Below are positions 31,701 to 62,400 of a stretch of 64,000 nt of DNA, in pieces (the first letter of the stretch is position 1; the number at the start of each line of letters is the position of its first letter). The position numbers were made by a program, and so were the translations under genes. The stretch is from Zootoca vivipara (Eukaryota). The notes under the pieces were generated by a model, which was not told the origin of the DNA, made no database searches, and worked only from the letters and a program-made list of their open reading frames with translations. The stretch covers positions 45,260,001 through 45,324,000 of the forward strand of contig NC_083288.1 of assembly GCF_963506605.1 (NCBI RefSeq). Direction: 5' to 3'.

Positions 31701-34700
31701 AGAAATCAGGAAAAGAGCAGGTGTGTCAAAGACACACTGCAAATTGCAAATAACACTGCTCTCCTCTACCATAAAAAATATTTAGGCTGAACATGTTTTA
31801 TGAACAGGAATAGGGCATAAAATGCATTAAAATATCTTCCCTATTGACAGTGTAACCACAAAGTTCTACCAGAACATCCTGGCCTTGGTGTTTGCCATAA
31901 AAGAGATCAATGGCAATCCGAAAATCTTGCCCAATGTCACCCTTGGCTTCCACATCTATGACAGCTACTTTGATGCGAGAATGACCTATCGAACCACTTT
32001 GGACCTTCTCTTCAAATGGCAAAGATTTGTCCCCAACTACAAATGTGACACTCAGAAAAACCTCATGGCTGTGATTGGGGGACTTACTTCTGAAACTTCT
32101 ATCCACATGGCGGATATCTTAAATCTCTACAGGGTTCCCCAGGTAGAATCAGTGCATAGGGGAATATTGGGAAGTTTCTTTTACTATTCTTTTGTTCAGA
32201 AGGAAAAGTGAAATAGTGTGTGAGATAAATAGCTGAGAAATTGCATTATTGAAACAAAAAGATGGCGCCGAGGTAAGACGCTCTTATCGGAGCTCAAAGA
32301 AATCTTTTAACTAAATGCCTTTGTTGCTGGCTCTCCTCCTTCTTTTGGATTTTATTTCCTTTCACTACTTCGTTGTGCTTTTGAACATCTTATCTTATCC
32401 ACCTCGGTGCCGGGACTTAATGAAGTTAATGAAGTTTTAACGAAGGCTCTCAGACATTCCCTCCCGGGCATTAAGGCACTCCCTCCCAGTTTCTCGTTGA
32501 CTCCTCGTGACAAACTTATTCCGAGGATCTTTAAGGACTTCTAATGGGCTTTTAACCCCAAAACCTACAAATTCATAAAACCACAAATTTCTCCCACCAC
32601 CTTTAACTTCGTGGACCCCCAAACATCTCAGTTGTTTTAGCAAACTGAGAAGGGGGGGGGGGATACTTCAAAGGAGTGCTCTAATTGGACCCGGTTTTAA
32701 ACTCCTCGCAGCAGGCCAGCCAGGACTGAATGAGAACTGAATGAGATTGCTACCTAAGAACTTTATCACTTTATCACTCTATTTAGAAGTCTGATCTCAT
32801 TGATTTAAGAAGAATCTAGCAATGAGAAGAGCCAAAAGACTCAGGTGTCCTGATACGGAAACTGACGCAGAGCCCTCTGGTTTCAAACAGAGTAATCTAG
32901 ATAATTACCTGCTACCTCAAAAACAGCACATATCTCCTCCCAAAACCTTCCTCAACCCTTTACATGGAAAGACAGTTGAAGAGATATCCCTAGGAATAAA
33001 TGAGGACAAGGCTACTACTCCCATAATCGAGGCACAAGTACTAATTGATAGAAAGGTGGAGCTGCTGGAGGAATGCTGCCTATTGACTGCTCAAACAGTT
33101 CAAAAAATCTTTGAACAATTACAAAACATCTCCAAGAAGCTGGATAACCCAGATGAAAGGAGGCAACTCACTCCCTTTTTGCCATCCTTAACAAGCCCTG
33201 GAGATAAACAGAACAAATACAAATTTATACCTCTAAACCAGCCAAAAACCAGAGGAAGCCCCCCTCACTCAGTCAACCTGATACTGAGGCCATGTGAGAT
33301 TGTTCTCCACATTTTTCCATATAGAGGGCCCCTACCTTACTGGGAGTCATCCTTCTGGGCCAGACATCATCTAAATCTGCTCCTAGGCCTTGAGGGTGGA
33401 AGCATTGACTTAAAAGCAGTCAAGAGGCTCACTAACGATGGATATTCCAAAAAAGTACTACTAAGATTTGGTAGTCATAGAATTCCAACCAAAATCTTAA
33501 GGGAAAAGGCTCATTTAGCCCAGAAAGGAATTATTCCGCATCGACACTTTGAAGATATATCACTCAGACCATTGATTGCATCTAAAAGACAGAACAAGAT
33601 GAACAAGGCCATTCCACCAGAAGCCGACATCTGCCCTACTCCTGTGGAAGAACCCAGTAGATGGGAGAAACCACAGCCAGCTACCCGGGAAATCACGCAA
33701 GAAAAATCCAAGCTCCCAAACCATGTGACTGTAGCATCAAATAACAGCCTCGCCCTCGACACAATAGACTGGACAGTCCCAGAAGAAGAAGATCTGCTGA
33801 GTAACTTTATCAAGCTACCAGATAAAGAACAAATAAACATACTCAGTAAATTGATGAAACTACAGGCCAGATTGACCGAAATACACCAACAAGGTCAACA
33901 AAATGCAGGAGAAACAATACACAATCAAACTTTACACTTACCAGCCTTCTCCCCAAAATGCATAGTCAAAAAGAGAGCTACTAATGGAACTTTTAAATGT
34001 ATAGATGCAGAGCTTCAAATCCAGCCTCCTTTAGAATATGAAATGGCAAGGAAAAACTCCAGTAACGAGACCACAAATTCCTGGCTGAGATATCAAATAC
34101 TAGCTCCAAACGAAATAGGTACCCCTTATTTAAGTACCACAAAGGACTCTAACATTGTCGAACAAAAGACGACCTCCAACAGACCTGACACACTGAGCTC
34201 AACATCAAATGAGGCCAAAGAAATGGAAGTAGAGACTGAAAACAGTCCTACTGTCCATAACAGTCCGCCAACCACAGAAATTTCTCAGGAACAAGGAACA
34301 GTTAAGGAAGAAAATCAAGAAAGGGAGGAAATTTTAATTTCCCGCACTTTAAAAAAGAATCTAGAAGATCCACCAATATGTTCCCCACCGAAAGCAGCGA
34401 CAAATGGCTGTATCTGCACAAGACAAAATCTCTCGCTGGACTCAATAACAGAACTAGAATGACTAAATGCCGTCAACCAGCCACCAACTCAAAAACGGAT
34501 CCTACGCTTGCTGTCCTGGAATATTGCAGGGTGGGGAAACAAAGACGGAGACCCAGACCTAATGAACTTCTTTAAAGATTTTGAATTAATACTTCTACAA
34601 GAAACATGGTCAACTAGAGATATTAAAATCAATGGATTCACCTCCTATACGAAACCCGCATTGAAAACAAACACGAAGGGCCGGCCGAAAGCAGGGTTCT

Positions 34701-37700
34701 GCTGTATGATCAAAGACAACTTAGGGTTTGAAATCAAGCAGCTAGAAAAATGCTTACCACTTGCACAAGCTCTACTTTTAACCCAAAAAGACGATACTTT
34801 GCTACTTGTAAATGTCTATATCCCCCCAACCAAAAACAATAGCAGCAGTGAAAATTGGTCACAACTAACCTTTTATATAGAAAATTTGACCGATAAATAC
34901 CCAAATGCCTCACTGATAATAGCAGGTGATTTTAATGCCAGAGTGGGAACCAACAATGAACAACTATGTAGCAAACTAAATTGGAATACTGATAATGATA
35001 TCGCACATGCCCTGAAAATAGGACGATTCTCCAGAGATAGGGTTGTAAACAATGAAGGCTTACACCTACTTGAATTATGTAACAACTTTAATTTGCAGAT
35101 TGTGAACGGTTCAACAAAAGGCGATAGAAGCGGGGAGTTTACATACTTCTCCCCCCGAGGATGCAGTGTCATCGATTATATTCTTGTCCCTTATAATATT
35201 ATAAATACGATCATGGACCTCAAAATTGGAACGCGTACTGAAAGTGACCATCAGCCATTATCGTTGTCTATTAACTTAAAGGATGAAACCAAAATAACCA
35301 AGTACAATATCATAGAACCTTCTCAATACAAACAAATGACCCAATTAAAATGGTCCCAGGAAATGAGTGCAGCAGTGGGGCAAAAACTTACAGCCAACCT
35401 GAGAAAACAAGTATTATCCAACTTAAAGACCACTAATTCCCACAGTGATATTCCGAAAATTTATAATGAAATCTTCCAAATGTTCGTAGAGCTTAGTACT
35501 CCACCTAAGGTTTGGGTACTTAAACATAGCACTAGCCCTTGGTTTGATGATGAATGTTTCCAGCTAAAAAGAAAACTGCGCCAAACATTTAAAAATAATC
35601 GCAGTAAACTAGAGCCCTCTTATCTTGATGAAAAAAGAAAATATCATTACATTCTGGCCGAAAAGAAACAGAAATATGCAACCCAAAAATGGCTACAATT
35701 ATTCGACTCAATTCAGAGTAAAAACAACAAAGCGTTCTGGAACCTAGTGTACGGAGGACTGAAAGCCGAAAATCAACTAACTCTTCCACCAATTGCAGAA
35801 TCCAAATGGTCCCAATACTTTACATCTGTATTTAACAATCTACACAGTGAACTTAAAGGAAATGAGACCACTAAAAATAAAATCAATAAACTCCAGGAGT
35901 GGCCAAGGGTAGAAGAAGAGGAAATTAGAGAGATAGTTAAAAATTTCAAATCGGGGAAATCTCCTGGGCCAGACGGTCTACCGATAGAATTATTCAAGAC
36001 CTATATAGATTGGTGGGCAGAACCCTTAGCTCAATTGTTTACTCTCATAGATAAATATGGGATCATACCTGAGATATGGTTAAGATCAATAATTATCCCA
36101 ATCTTTAAAAATGGCGACCCAAAAGAACCAAGGAATTATAGACCGATAAGCCTATTATCAGTGATAGGGAAAATCTACGCTAAGCACCTTTTATCTAAAC
36201 TCCTTACCTGGATGAAAAATCTAAATTTACCAGGGAAAGAACAAATAGGTTTCTCTAAAGGTTGCTCTACTTTAGACCACTGCCTTATACTTATGCATTT
36301 GGTTGAGAAATACAGATCCCAAAGGCAATCTAAGATATATGCTGCTTTTGTAGACTTTCGTGGTGCCTTCGACTCAATTGACCGCCCAAAGCTGTGGAGG
36401 AAACTCGCAGAATTAAAAATTGACCAGCGCTTATTGATTCTAATACAAAATCTATACTCTTCCAATACCAGTCAGGTCAAACTTAACACCAAAGGTCACC
36501 TTTCATCAGACATCCCAAACTCGAAAGGGGTAAAACAAGGGTGTATTCTTGCCCCCTTTCTATTTAATTTATTTTTATCAGACTTGCCAGATCACCTCCA
36601 AAAAATAGAATCACATGCCCCTAAACTTAATCAGAACCCAGTTCCTCTCTTATTATACGCAGACGATGCTGTCCTACTATCATTAACGAGCTTGGGTCTG
36701 AAACGTCTTATATCTTCTCTGATCCTTTACTGCGAATGTAACAAACTCTCTATAAATTATGAGAAGACAAAAATTTTGGTCTTCTCGAATGGTTGGAAAT
36801 TAGAGAAATGGAAAATAAGAGGGCAAGAAATCCAACAAGTGAAAATCTATAGGTATCTGGGAATCTTATTCCAGAGCAATTTAGGGTGGGCAAATCATCG
36901 CACAAATGCCATAAAACAGGCAAAGTGCACCTCATCAGCAGTTGCCCGTTTTTATTATCAGAAAGGTAATCAATTTATTCCTGCGGCCAATCAGATATTT
37001 CAAACAAAAGTGCAATCCCAGATATTCTATGGAATCCCGCTATGGGTCCAAGCATATAACAGTGATTTAAAAAAGATTCACTCCAGCTTTCTGAGACGTA
37101 TTCTTGGACTCCCAACTGTGATCAAATATGAAACAATGTGTGCAGAAATAGGCATACACACAATGGAATATTGGGCCTGGACCACCTCAATAAAATACTG
37201 GTTACGCTGCCATTTTCGCTGCCCCCCATCAAGTCTGCTCGCTGATTTGCTCAAAGACTCCTATAAATCAAGATGGTATCAGTACCTTGAAAAAAAGATT
37301 GAATCTTTAGGCATCGAGCTGGAGCCCCTGTACAATTCTAACGAGCAATACATTTTCCATAATATCCTAACTAGACTAAAGGATGTCGAGAGACAAAATA
37401 TTATGGCAGCTGTAAACAAAATTTGCTCCCCCATATTCTATGATTTAAGTATCTTAGATAGCAGAGCCAATTACGTCACTAAGTTAATAATCCCAGCCCA
37501 ACGTAGGGCTTTTATGCTGGCCCGTTTGAATGTTTTTCCCTCGGCATTTGTCAGGGGAAGATACCAAAACATTCCTAGAAACAAAAGATTCTGCAGATGT
37601 TCTATGAATGTCCCGGACACTGTAGAGCATATTCTCTTTCATTGCCCATTGTACAGTACGCTCCGTCAACGCGTGCTCTCCCCTCTTTTGGGTGGTCTGG

Positions 37701-40700
37701 AACCCCAGCAAGGTGAAAGTGTGGGATTCTGCCTATCTGACATTGACCAAAGGGTAACGGCGGGGGTAGCCGAGTTTTTGGTAGCAGTCCTCCAAGGAGC
37801 AGGTTAACAAGGNNNNNNNNNNNNNNNNNNNNNNNNNNNNNNNNNNNNNNNNNNNNNNNNNNNNNNNNNNNNNNNNNNNNNNNNNNNNNNNNNNNNNNNN
37901 NNNNNNNNNNNNNNNNNNNNNNNNNNNNNNNNNNNNNNNNNNNNNNNNNNNNNNNNNNNNNNNNNNNNNNNNNNNNNNNNNNNNNNNNNNNNNTTTATAT
38001 ATATTTCAAGGCTTTTATATGTTATTTTCTCTTTTATGGTTTTATTTGCATAATGCCTAATAAAGGTTTGATAAGTAGTATAAGTAGTAGCATTATTTCC
38101 CCATAACTAGAAATTTAACCAATCCTTCCTTCCTTCCTTTCTTTTTCTTTCTTTCTATGATTAGAATTGTGCCTACAAATTTCTTAAGGATATGCTCTGC
38201 TAAATTATCATTTTCTTTTAGCTCACCTATGGCTCATTTGCTTCAGAGGAGAGTCAGTCAATGCAGAAGTCTTTTTATACCATGGTCCCAAATGAAGACC
38301 TTCAAAATGTAGGGATTATCCGGTTACTTCAGTATTTCAGATGGAAGTGGGTTGGGCTCTTTGTTATGAATAATAATAGCGGGGAACATTTTTTGAGGAC
38401 CCTGGAGCTATTGTTTTCCAACAATGGGATCTGTTCAGCCTTCACAAAAAGAATCCCACTTCAAGTTCGTTTAGAATATATGGAGAAAATATTTGGTGAA
38501 ATTGAAGGTATTTATGAAGGTATCAGAGATGAAAAGGCCAGTACACTTATCACCTATGGAGATGATGGGGCAATTGCATGGCTGAGAACAGCTGTCTTTA
38601 TAATAGATAATATACTGGTACATCATCAAAATGCATCATTTGGAAAGGTCTGGATCATGACAGCCCAGATAGATTTTGTATCATATGGAAGTCAGAGGAC
38701 CTGGGATTTTCAGCTGTTCCAAGGTGCCCTTTCCTTTACAATTCACTCAGAAGAGCTTCCAGAGTTCAACCAATTCCTTCAGAACATCCAAACACACAGG
38801 ACCAAAGCAGATGGCTTTTGGAAGGAATTCTGGGAGCAGGCATTTGACTGTTTCTATCCAGATCCTGGTATGCCAGTCATAGAAGATGGAAAGTGTACTG
38901 GAGAGGAGAGGCTGGAAAGCCTCCCTGCAGGTGTTTTTCAAATGCACATGACTGGGCAGAGCTACAGTATCTACAATGCTGCCTATGCTGTAGCTCACGC
39001 ATTGCATGCCATTGCCTCATCCAGATCCCCGCACAGAGCAGTGACAGTTGGTTACAGTGTTGGATTTCCATCTCTGCAGCCTTGGCAGGTAATGTTACAG
39101 AGGCAATGGACTGATTAGCAGAAGAATAGGACGTTGCTTTATACTAAGTTAGGCCTCACATCCATCTGTTTCAGTATTGTGTACACTGTCTGGGTTGGAA
39201 TCTCCTGGGTTTGAGACAATATGAGATTCCCAGTGTCACTGAAGATTCCGGGGATTGAATCTGTGCCTGTTCCATGCAAGGAGATGCCCAACCAGTGAAA
39301 CCAGGGAGCTGCTACCCTTTACTGCCCCTCTTCTCATATGTAAAAAAACAGTTGACAAAGTATTCTGCATCTTAGTTATGCCAGACCCTCTAAGTGTCCC
39401 TTTTTTCCAGGGAGGTCCCTGATTTAGAGAAGTCTTCCCAGTTTCTGATTTGACCCTGTCCCGCTTTTCCTTAGAATGTCACTATTTTCATTGGTGAAAT
39501 GTTGGAAGGTATGGAGTTATTCAACCCCCAAGCCGCTTGAAGTCAATCATGTATAGGGAAGCTTTTTAAAATGTTTAATGTTTTATTAGGTTTCTTATAT
39601 GTTGGAATCTGCCAGGAGTTCTAGGGCTACCCAGTAAGTTATCATTATGGAATGGGACGTCAGTATTTTCATCGTAGAAATGTTGGAGGGTATGTCATGA
39701 TTTCAGTCTTGCTGGTTTGGATTTCATCTTGTAAGTTGACCTTGGAATCCGGTTCAATTGGGAACCTCAAATAATTTTGTTCTTCTTCTTCTCTTAAATA
39801 GATCAACTCATTTCTTCAAGTTGTTTCATTTAACAACTCAGCTGGAGAAAAAGTATCATTTAATGATAACAGGGAAATGAGAGGAGGATTTGATATCATG
39901 AATTTGGTCACATTCGCAAACACGTCTTTCCAGAGAGTGAAAGTTGGATGGGTGGGCCTCAGTGATAGAGGAGATGAAGAGTTAATAATCAAACACGACA
40001 AAATTCTATGGCACCAAAGTTTTAACCAGGTAGGGATTGTAGGAACCTCTCTGCAGAAACTGCAGAAATTTTCTGCCATTTCCTGTTCAGTCTAATATTT
40101 CTTTGCAATAAAGGGTACAAAAATTCTAGACTGCAAAAATATTTAAGAGCGCTTGGAGAGCAGGAAGATGGTCTTCCATTAATTTCCCCCCCTGAATATT
40201 GAAGACTGATTTTTGCCCCTTCTATGACCTTTTTTTCTTTCTATGATTGATGTAGAAGAGATTTCAAGTCTTCATCCCTTCTCAGTCACATTGATGGACT
40301 TCCTGGCTAGCTATGGCGATCTGGCTAGTGTTCTTCAGACTCACCTCTTCAGACCCCTTGCTTTCCTGACTGCTAGGAGACGGGCTGCTTCTGATGAGGG
40401 GGGGGGTCTCTGTAATCCCTCCCCCTTACAACATCCTTCAGGATGTCCTCCTTAGATGGTTATTTTCAGAGGGTGGTTTTTGAGGAGTGTGGTTCTGCCT
40501 AGAGATGTGAAGGCCCGAAAAAAACCCGGAAAAATTCGGAAAAACCCCGGGGGTTTTCTGGTTTTTATCCTGAAGCCTTTTTTGTTTTTTTCCCGAAAAA
40601 TTGGAAAAAAATAGATTATGGAATGTTTTATTTTAACATGATGAATAAAATTTTTAAGATAATTTTACTTTTTTTAAAAAAAATATATTTTTATTGAGAA

Positions 40701-59405: not shown

Positions 59406-62400
59406 ATGGTGAGGCACTTGCTGCTGCTGCTGCTGCTGCTGCCTCACACAATGTGCAGGACAATGAAGTGCCTTGCCGTTGATCCAATCTCTGTGCCTCA
59501 TGAATGGTACCAGGCAGGTGACCTCCTCATTGGTGGGATTGCTTCTCAGATCACTTACTACTTTAGTGAATTATTATTCAGGGAACATCCTTCTCAGGAC
59601 CTGTTTGACATGCCACAGTAAGCAATAATATGCCCCTCAATGAAAGGGATATAAACCAATCCTATATTACCTGAAAAGAGAAAATGTGTTGATAAGAACA
59701 ATGGGCACATTAGCAGTACATGGTCTCAGCCTACAGGATGGTACCGAAGTCAGTGAGCTAGCCTTAAGCAAATGAAGCTCGTCTGAACATTCATTCCTCC
59801 AATCTCTGTAACTACACCCTTTCATTCTTACCAAAGCAGCCAAGGAAGTTATAAGCATNNNNNNNNNNNNNNNNNNNNNNNNNNNNNNNNNNNNNNNNNN
59901 NNNNNNNNNNNNNNNNNNNNNNNNNNNNNNNNNNNNNNNNNNNNNNNNNNNNNNNNNNNNNNNNNNNNNNNNNNNNNNNNNNNNNNNNNNNNNNNNNNNN
60001 NNNNNNNNNNGCTAATTAAAAACAATGTACAGTAAATATAAAAGCATGGAGTATTCCTGTGACACCAAAAACTGTTAATGAAGGGTTGTATCGGTTAGCG
60101 GATTTTCTTTCTTCTTTTTTTGTTCTAATTTTTATGTATTATGTGATGTTGCATTCTGTTTTTAAGTTATGAACGGCACTTAGATCTACCAGAGAAGGGT
60201 AATATACTAATATAATAAATAAAAATACATTATTATTAGTAGTAGTAGCAGTAGTAGTATCATAAATAAGCTTGGGTGAACTTCTGTCACCATCAACAGG
60301 CAAAGTTTTCTTCAGTGATATAGTTTCTGGTATAAAGAAATAAATATGGATATATAAATGCAGAAAAGCATGGTGCAGGTGTGCCATCGAAAGGGAAATG
60401 AAATGCCAAAATCTGCAGGCAATGGAATTAACATAATTAATGTAAAGATACCAAATCACTCTTAAGACTGTGAAAAAGTTCATTCTGCTAGGATGCTTTG
60501 TGCTGAAATTGCAGAGGAGAAACCAAGAAAAGAGCAGGTGTGTCAAAGATACACTGCAGATCACAAATACAATTGCTCTCCACTTTCATCCCTTAGATTT
60601 TGGCTGAATGTGTTTTTTGAATAGGAAGAGGACATAACGGTCTCATGCATTAAAGTATTTTCCCTCCCTTTTTATATCTTCCCTGTTGACAGTGTAACAA
60701 CAAAGTTCTATCAGAACATCCTGGCCATTGTGTTTGCCATAAAAGAGATCAATGACAATCCGAAGATCTTGCCCAATGTCACCCTTGGCTTCCACATCTA
60801 TGACAGCTACTTTGATGCAAGAATGACCTATCGAACCACTTTGGACCTTCTCTTCAAATGGCAAATATTTGTCCCCAACTACAAATGTGACACTCAGAAA
60901 AACCTGATCGCTGTGATTGGAGGACTTACTTCTGACACCTCTATCTACATGGCAGATGTCTTAAATCTCTACAGGGCTCCACAGGTAGAATCAGTGCATA
61001 GGGGAATGTGGGGAAGTTTCATTTGACATTCTTTGATTCAGAAGGAAAAGTGAAATATTAGTGTGTGAAAGAAATAGCCAGAAATTCCATTACTTTCAGA
61101 TAACTAAAAAATATTGAGCCAGGATTTTTCTTCCATTACTATTTCGAGTTCCACCTTCAACCATCTTTAGGAAATGTTCTCCTAAATTATCATTTTCTTT
61201 TAGCTCACCTATGGCTCATTTGCTTCAGAGGAGATTCAATCAAGGCAGACAACCTTTTATAGCATGGTCCCAATGGAAGCCCATCAATATGTAGGGATTA
61301 TCCAGTTACTTCAGTACTTCAAATGGATATGGGTTGGGCTCTTCGTTGTGAATAGTAATAGTGGGGAATATTTTTTGAGGACCCTGGAGCTATTGTTTTC
61401 CAACAATGGGATCTGTTCAGCCTTCACAAAAAGAATCCCACTTCAAGCTCATATGGATAATATGGAAGGAATGTATGATATAATGAGAAGTATTGATGAA
61501 GGTCTCGTAGATGAAAAGGCCACTGCAGTTATATTCTATGGAGACTATGGGGCAATTTCATGGCTGAGAACTGTTTCACTTTTCCAAGATATTGGAGGTA
61601 AGCAAAACATAACATTTGGGAAGGTCTGGATCATGACAGCCCAGATAGATTTTGTATCAACCGGACACCAGAGGACCTGGGATTTTCAGCTGTTCCAAGG
61701 TGCTCTTTGCTTTACAATTCACTCAGAAGAGCTCCCAAAGTTCAACCAATTCCTTCAGAACATCCAAACACACAGGACCAAAGCAGATGGCTTTTGGAAG
61801 GACTTCTGGGAGCAGGCATTTGACTGTCTCTTTCCAGATCCAAGTATGCTTGTCATGGATGATGGAACGTGTACTGGAGAGGAGAGGCTGGATAGTCTCC
61901 CTGCAGGTGTTTTTGAAATGCACATGACTGGGCAGAGCTACAGTATCTACAATGCTGCCTATGCTGTAGCTCATGCATTGCATGCCATTTACTCATCCAG
62001 ATCCCTGCACAGAGCAGTGACCGCTGGTTACAGTGTTGGATTTCCATCTCTGCAGCCTTGGCAGGTAATGTTGCAGAGCCAAATATTCTCATGTCAATGA
62101 ACTGATTAACAGGAGGAGAACAGGAAGTTGCTTTATACAAGATGAGGTCTGTCAACCTTCTGTTTCAGTATTGTGTACACTGTCTGGTTTGGGCTGTCCA
62201 GAGTTCGAGACAAGATGAGATTCCGAGTTTTACCAGAAGATTCTGGGGATTGAATCTGGGCCCTTTCCATGCAAGGAGATGCTCAACCAGGGAGATGCTC
62301 CCCTTTACTGGCCCTCTTCTCATATGTAAAAAAAAACCAGATGTATAAATATTCTGCATCTTAGACATGGTTACTCCCTTGCTCGTTTACATTTCGTCTT

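Follow-up and report, generated by a model that had tools for sequence, protein, structure and literature searches.

How does a retrotransposon whose enzyme frame lacks a usable start codon of its own come to make that enzyme? The question is raised by a locus of the lizard Zootoca vivipara (NC_083288.1), where the 64-kb stretch of DNA analysed here, referred to as the window, holds one full-length retrotransposon of ~5.8 kb without long terminal repeats (non-LTR). Its first open reading frame (ORF1) ends in TGA, and after this stop the same frame runs as CTA AAT GCC... for 1114 codons to TAA 37805-37807 (ORF2), encoding an endonuclease and a reverse transcriptase (EN-RT). A ribosome passing the stop would yield a product of 546 + 1 + 1114 = 1661 amino acids (aa). 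The element is an apurinic endonuclease (APE)-type two-ORF non-LTR retrotransposon, or long interspersed nuclear element (LINE), of lacertid lizards, and has been amplified recently. The translation of ORF2 from bicistronic LINE RNA is a long-standing question, for which termination-reinitiation, internal ribosome entry sites, stop-start coupling and 2A peptides have been proposed.

The family is a well-supported candidate for the first LINE to make its enzyme through stop codon readthrough. In the proposed mechanism, a near-cognate tRNA would decode UGA within the leaky UGA-CUA context, and ~1-2% of the ribosomes completing ORF1 would carry on to give a 1661-aa ORF1-EN-RT fusion in the style of gag-pol, with the predicted disordered tail of ORF1 (residues 365-546) as a possible linker to EN-RT; residues 1-10 of ORF2 are also disordered in the AlphaFold model. 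That some of this fusion is made at all appears likely from the sequence. That readthrough would be the working route to EN-RT is close to an even chance and slightly under it, which still makes it the likeliest of the explanations weighed here, and the strongest form of the proposal, in which UGA-CUA readthrough would be the sole source of EN-RT and the fusion the working enzyme, is put forward tentatively. The first-pass annotation of this DNA had proposed such a gag-pol-style fusion; its layout and leaky context stand, whereas the rate of 1-2% in lizard cells and the role of the fusion as functional enzyme source are what we infer.

The stop codon and the missing start codon

The spacer between the two frames is zero, and no second stop occurs in the next 16 codons, up to the endonuclease motif (Table 1). 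According to the first-pass annotation, ORF1 ends at TGA 34460-34462 with the frame open to 37807, the first in-frame ATG (34562) follows the SWN motif, and an ATG at 34459 is out of the ORF2 frame. The coordinates all hold: the in-frame ATG is residue 34, past LLSWN (34508-34522), and the ATG at 34459 opens only a 38-codon ORF ending at 34575. Stop-start coupling would use an AUG at the ORF1 stop in the frame of ORF2, and AUG 34459 lies in another frame.

Table 1. Coordinates of the element and its parts in the window
Feature	Position	Strand	Basis or remark
Left target-site duplication GCATTATT	32243-32250	.	same 8-mer recurs at 38090-38097
5' untranslated region (UTR), 563 nt	32259-32821	+	second species' contigs start matching at 32259
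ORF1, 546 aa, ATG 32822, stop TGA 34460-34462	32822-34462	+	open reading frame
Long helix of ORF1 protein (ORF1p), residues 68-116, candidate coiled coil	33023-33169	+	AlphaFold model, predicted local distance difference test (pLDDT) 77-93
RNA recognition motif (RRM)-like domain of ORF1p, residues 153-245	33278-33556	+	AlphaFold, pLDDT >90, beta-alpha-beta-beta-alpha-beta
ATG overlapping the stop (ATGA), other frame, 38-codon ORF	34459-34575	+	out of ORF2 frame in every copy seen
TGA-CTA, sole interruption between ORF1 and EN-RT frame	34460-34465	+	sequence
ORF2 frame, 1114 codons, no ATG before residue 34	34463-37807	+	reading frame
First endonuclease strand and catalytic Asn, ILRLLSWN, residues 13-20	34499-34522	+	strand pLDDT ~85
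Apurinic-type endonuclease domain, residues 17-266	34511-35260	+	Pfam PF03372/PF14529 (Exo_endo_phos)
First in-frame ATG of ORF2, residue 34, in helix 31-37	34562-34564	+	sequence and AlphaFold
Reverse transcriptase domain, residues 553-801	36119-36865	+	Pfam RVT_1 (PF00078), E 8e-33
C-terminal Cys-His motif of ORF2	37592-37645	+	sequence
3' UTR	37808-38089	+	masked N run 37813-37993, then tail
Right target-site duplication GCATTATT	38090-38097	.	directly after 3' tail

The ORF2 frame encodes a complete enzyme, with endonuclease residues E47, D156, N158, D238 and H263 invariant in the alignment and the YADD box of the reverse transcriptase at 36656-36667. In Foldseek, the AlphaFold model of ORF2 (pLDDT 79) aligns with human L1 ORF2p over the full length (E 1e-38), and the ESM Atlas matches of ORF2 were only unnamed EN-RT clusters. 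The position of the start codon matters for the endonuclease: translation beginning at ATG 34562 would cost the first strand and the catalytic Asn, because Met34, in its helix, follows that strand, and all relatives that cover the region keep the WN motif. Before SWN, the only near-cognate codons are AUC 34499, UUG 34508 and CUG 34511, all of them lacking a -3 purine and a +4 G; the latter two lie within strand 1, which a start there would cut. To judge from the model, a full endonuclease implies that decoding of ORF2 must start no more than 12 codons past the ORF1 stop or continue from ORF1.

The stop itself stands in a leaky context, as the first-pass annotation had stated: UGA-CUA by itself gives 1.5% readthrough in HEK-293T cells, UGA being the best stop for the motif, and this readthrough needs no RNA structure, since the 12 nt after the stop suffice (PMC4132726). 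Because UGA-CUA is leaky and the downstream zero frame is open, coding and needed, the fusion would be expected at about 1.5%. A yield of 1-2% would suit the element, because the ORF2p requirement of LINE ribonucleoprotein particles (RNPs) is considered very low, possibly one or two molecules for each L1 RNA (PMC2951350).

Other ways of bridging the stop find less room at this junction. A 2A peptide was rejected because the motif D(V/I)ExNPGP was not found near the junction, and selenocysteine at the UGA because Rfam finds no selenocysteine insertion sequence (SECIS), nor any ribozyme or other family at the element. Coupled translation often uses stop-start motifs such as the ATGA that overlaps the stop. 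A restart at its ATG followed by a +1 shift could in principle deliver the enzyme, as could adenosine-to-inosine editing that turns UGA into UGG, or removal of the stop by splicing. However, these would need two rare events, neither a shift-prone site nor a double-stranded structure is present, and no joint spanning the stop was found in any run, the RNA data being nearly empty. Such recoding is therefore regarded as very unlikely.

Other copies, a second species and distant relatives

The layout of the junction is common to the other copies found. The 90% cluster of ORF1 comprises 12 distinct variants, from Podarcis muralis (one annotated) and run assemblies, each exactly 546 aa, 89-97% identical and ending in TELE-stop. 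The matching ORF2 cluster contains products of 1099 or 1081 aa only, the former called from the TTG equivalent to 34508 and the latter from the ATG equivalent to 34562. A fused or longer product (~1661 aa) was not found in a search that admitted lengths up to 1950 aa. In DNA from the same species, one contig is identical to the window over 33764-34880, at a word depth of ~380. A second species, whose copies of the family are 1-1.7% divergent, has a contig that covers 34171-35877 and keeps TGA-CTA at the junction; the difference closest to the stop is a synonymous GCC to GCT at 34471, and no indel was reported in this contig between the stop and the endonuclease. The first-pass annotation had allowed for a 1-nt indel that would bring ATG 34459 into the ORF2 frame. 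This was rejected, since it is absent from the contigs of both species and none of the ORF2 calls begins before the TTG or ATG just mentioned.

Every copy seen thus has the same stop, context and frame, across two species only 1-2% apart, the comparison covering proteins called by others and the contigs of two runs. Contigs mask rare variants, and minority copies may carry another codon at 34460-34462. Because it is common to the other copies and the second species, the in-frame TGA-CTA is, on this sequence comparison, a feature of the family and not a mutation private to this copy or a slip of assembly. The first-pass annotation had listed a nonsense mutation in a single-ORF element among its alternatives, and an error of the assembly would leave the same picture. 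Only the in-frame layout itself speaks for either; the 12 ORF1 variants stop at the same codon, the TGA recurs in the identical and second-species contigs, and all 51 distant ORF1 homologues are stand-alone proteins, so that a private mutation or assembly error is hardly credible and the mutation was rejected as contradicted.

These copies also bear on whether ORF2 is used at all. Ribosomes might never translate it completely, or might start only at ATG 34562 and so yield no working endonuclease, and the copies would then be mobilised in trans by the enzyme of a related family. The frame lacks a start codon, and an RNA run gave only 8 partly fitting reads, as such a passenger might. However, ORF2 is open for 1114 codons in the window and is also intact in at least six further distinct copies (1099 or 1081 aa, ~94-97% identical to the ORF2 of the window), all catalytic residues are present, and a decaying passenger ORF would not remain open in diverged copies, which makes mobilisation in trans improbable.

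A further feature of the second species lies just before the stop, where two contigs meet at 34429-34458 and word depth changes from 311 to 587. About half of this species' copies seem to differ upstream of ~34430, and the breakpoint could be a variant that lacks ORF1 or is rearranged, or a truncation hotspot.

Distant relatives place the element within a two-ORF lineage. Among 1.8 billion representatives of any length, 51 distant relatives of ORF1 were found, from squamate, Logan and ENA sources, with none from JGI metagenomes, and including Naja naja, Podarcis lilfordi and contigs of 5.3-6.1 kb; none of the 51 is joined to EN-RT and none exceeds 640 aa, and because all stand alone the lineage is taken as two-ORF. 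Assignment to the L1 clade was rejected, as ORF1 has no Transposase_22 match and the tail is ATAAGTAGT twice rather than poly(A). As cited in PMC3708506, the Vingi clade is described as having a single ORF of ~993 aa and no ORF1, unlike the present element with its ORF1 and 1114-aa ORF2.

Among the distant relatives of ORF2, about nine of 20 (P0017, P0020-P0024, P0028, P0033 and P0036) have called starts inside the endonuclease, after WN. To judge from these calls, many LINEs of this group may have an ORF2 that lacks a start codon of its own, and the loss of the ORF2 start is perhaps common whatever the stop context.

Readthrough weighed against reinitiation

The closest parallels to the proposed readthrough come from outside the LINEs. 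The element shares UGA-CUA and an open coding downstream frame with OPRL1, OPRK1, AQP4, MAPK10, MDH1 and alphavirus nsP3/nsP4 (PMC4132726). It differs from the vertebrate and alphavirus UGA-CUAG in its fourth base, in an extension that is a 1114-aa enzyme and not a short tail, and in a conservation known only within one young family. With gammaretroviral Gag-Pol of the murine leukaemia virus (MuLV) type it has in common an RNA-binding structural protein and a polymerase in one frame, separated by one stop, and a low enzyme-to-coat ratio. MuLV readthrough takes place at UAG with a pseudoknot 8 nt downstream, whereas the element has UGA-CUA without significant structure; because it is a non-LTR element without a protease, its fusion would not be cleaved.

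Among LINEs, single-ORF elements with an N-terminal 2A (L1Tc, Ingi, some CR1/RTE) set the dose of EN-RT by recoding, as is proposed here, although they differ from the element, which has an ORF1 and no such motif near the junction. SART1, with its UAAUG, resembles the element in having no intergenic spacer and in tying ORF2 translation to ORF1 termination. However, its AUG is in the ORF2 frame and depends on a downstream structure, while the AUG that overlaps the ORF1 stop of the element lies in another frame and such a structure was not found. The mammalian L1 elements L1Hs and L1Rn are likewise two-ORF and APE-type, with a coiled coil and RRM in ORF1p, in-frame ORFs and a tiny need for ORF2p. 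They have a spacer of 60-63 nt, two in-frame stops and an ORF2 AUG (PMC2241872), as opposed to the zero spacer, single leaky stop and missing AUG of the element, and they also differ from it in their poly(A) tail and Transposase_22 ORF1.

Several points weigh against readthrough. The human and rat L1 ORFs are in frame and yet give no fusion protein (PMC2241872), and in the limited collection of literature searched readthrough was not described for any non-LTR element. The first-pass annotation had asked whether the RNA downstream of the stop folds; stabilising structure 3' of the stop, of the kind that only some classes of readthrough need, was not found in two 161-nt windows (z +0.8 each against shuffles), and there is only a local hairpin from ~39 nt after the stop codon. 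The base following CUA is A, not the G of the stronger CUA-G, and the RNA evidence amounts to the 8 partly fitting reads from one raw run. Among the relatives at 35-42% identity (P0017, P0018), those such as P0018 carry their own ATG 8 codons before LLSWN, and because of it the ancestor would have started ORF2 separately. The conservation of TGA-CTA is weak evidence of selection, because the copies differ by only 1-2% in DNA and at most ~11% in ORF1 protein. The in-frame TGA-CTA was also chosen post hoc out of a very large scan. With the element's base composition, the chance of an in-frame layout, no further stop in 16 codons, TGA and CTA together is ~6e-4, a figure that is no test because it was calculated post hoc for a feature picked from a scan of many LINE families.

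The serious rival is AUG-independent termination-reinitiation, the unconventional route put forward for mammalian L1, in which the 40S subunit would stay on the RNA after UGA and resume in the ORF2 frame within a few codons, giving separate proteins and leaving the stop context incidental. It draws strength from L1 itself, because the in-frame ORFs of L1Hs and L1Rn give no fusion (PMC2241872) and L1 ORF2 is translated by unconventional termination-reinitiation, SART1 by stop-start coupling (PMC5972666, PMC2951350). Some relatives carry an ATG for ORF2 alone at about this position, and the calls that start inside the endonuclease in about nine of 20 distant relatives also fit. Alisch et al. in 2006 reportedly found L1 ORF2 to be translated even when its AUG is lost. 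However, the window of 12 codons contains no AUG and only one weak near-cognate codon, the natural restart site AUGA is out of the ORF2 frame, and a SART1-like downstream structure was not found. Reinitiation after an ORF of 546 codons is, moreover, normally very inefficient (an argument made in PMC3894237). This rival fits the layout as well as readthrough does, and we regard it as quite possible, if somewhat less likely.

With its two frames directly adjoining, a single leaky stop between them and no start codon for ORF2, this young and intact family reduces the question of LINE translation to two clean alternatives. If the fusion is functional, retrovirus-like gag-pol dosing would have arisen independently in non-LTR elements, and the family would be the first case of such readthrough demonstrated in a non-LTR retrotransposon. 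Cis-preference would then have a direct physical explanation too, the coat protein delivering the enzyme to its own RNA. If the fusion is not functional, the family would be a natural case of AUG-free reinitiation outside L1. Either outcome would teach something about LINE biology and might help in designing gene-insertion tools based on retrotransposons.

The ORF1 protein, the ends of the element and its setting

Comparison of ORF1 with the second species listed 21 differences, 10 synonymous and 11 nonsynonymous, where 22% synonymous would be expected (dN/dS ~0.31, p=0.008). This pattern of substitution indicates that ORF1 is a real gene under purifying selection. ORF1 had no Pfam match, a PDB sequence search with it gave no credible match, and its ESM Atlas matches were all below 0.9. 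Foldseek matches of the RRM-like domain are RRMs for the most part (TM 0.55-0.65 on the target), and this region is the conserved core among the 51 distant homologues. In the model, two further helices follow the RRM and precede a tail of ~180 aa predicted to be disordered. With its long helix, RRM and disordered tail, the product is predicted to be a gag-like RNA-binding protein. One gene model of Podarcis muralis (P0004, XP_077779110.1; 557 aa) tracks ORF1 to residue ~513 and then continues into unrelated sequence; the prediction is probably chimeric, with a splice leading out of a copy of the LINE.

The 5' UTR contains seven upstream ATGs opening ORFs of 3-41 codons, and the first of these (32262, ATGGCGCCGAG) leads directly into GTAAGA, a splice donor look-alike. 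Because of these ATGs and the donor-like GTAAGA in the leader, ORF1 translation may need leaky scanning, leader splicing or internal entry. The 8 nt that separate the left target-site duplication from the point where other copies start to match are GAAACAAA (32251-32258). They are not shared by the copy of the second species and may represent extra bases gained at the 5' junction during insertion.

At the other end, the tail is a 9-mer repeat (ATAAGTAGT twice, 38071-38088). In the DNA run from the same species, word depth climbs ~45-fold, from ~400 at the 5' end to ~18,700 at the 3' end, and this gradient therefore indicates many 5'-truncated insertions. The 8-bp target-site duplication, the lack of LTRs and the many 5'-truncated copies are those of a LINE. 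Because of the duplication, the near-identical copies, the depth gradient and the intact ORFs, the family is young and probably still active.

A second copy of the LINE was not found within the window by blastn. The element lies in sense orientation inside an intron of a V2R / calcium-sensing-receptor-like gene, with flanking exon regions at 31860-32150 and 38230-39090, the downstream exon matching Pfam ANF_receptor (E 1e-16). The window contains two runs of N, one of 181 bases in the 3' UTR of the element (37813-37993) and one of 152 bases at 59859-60010.

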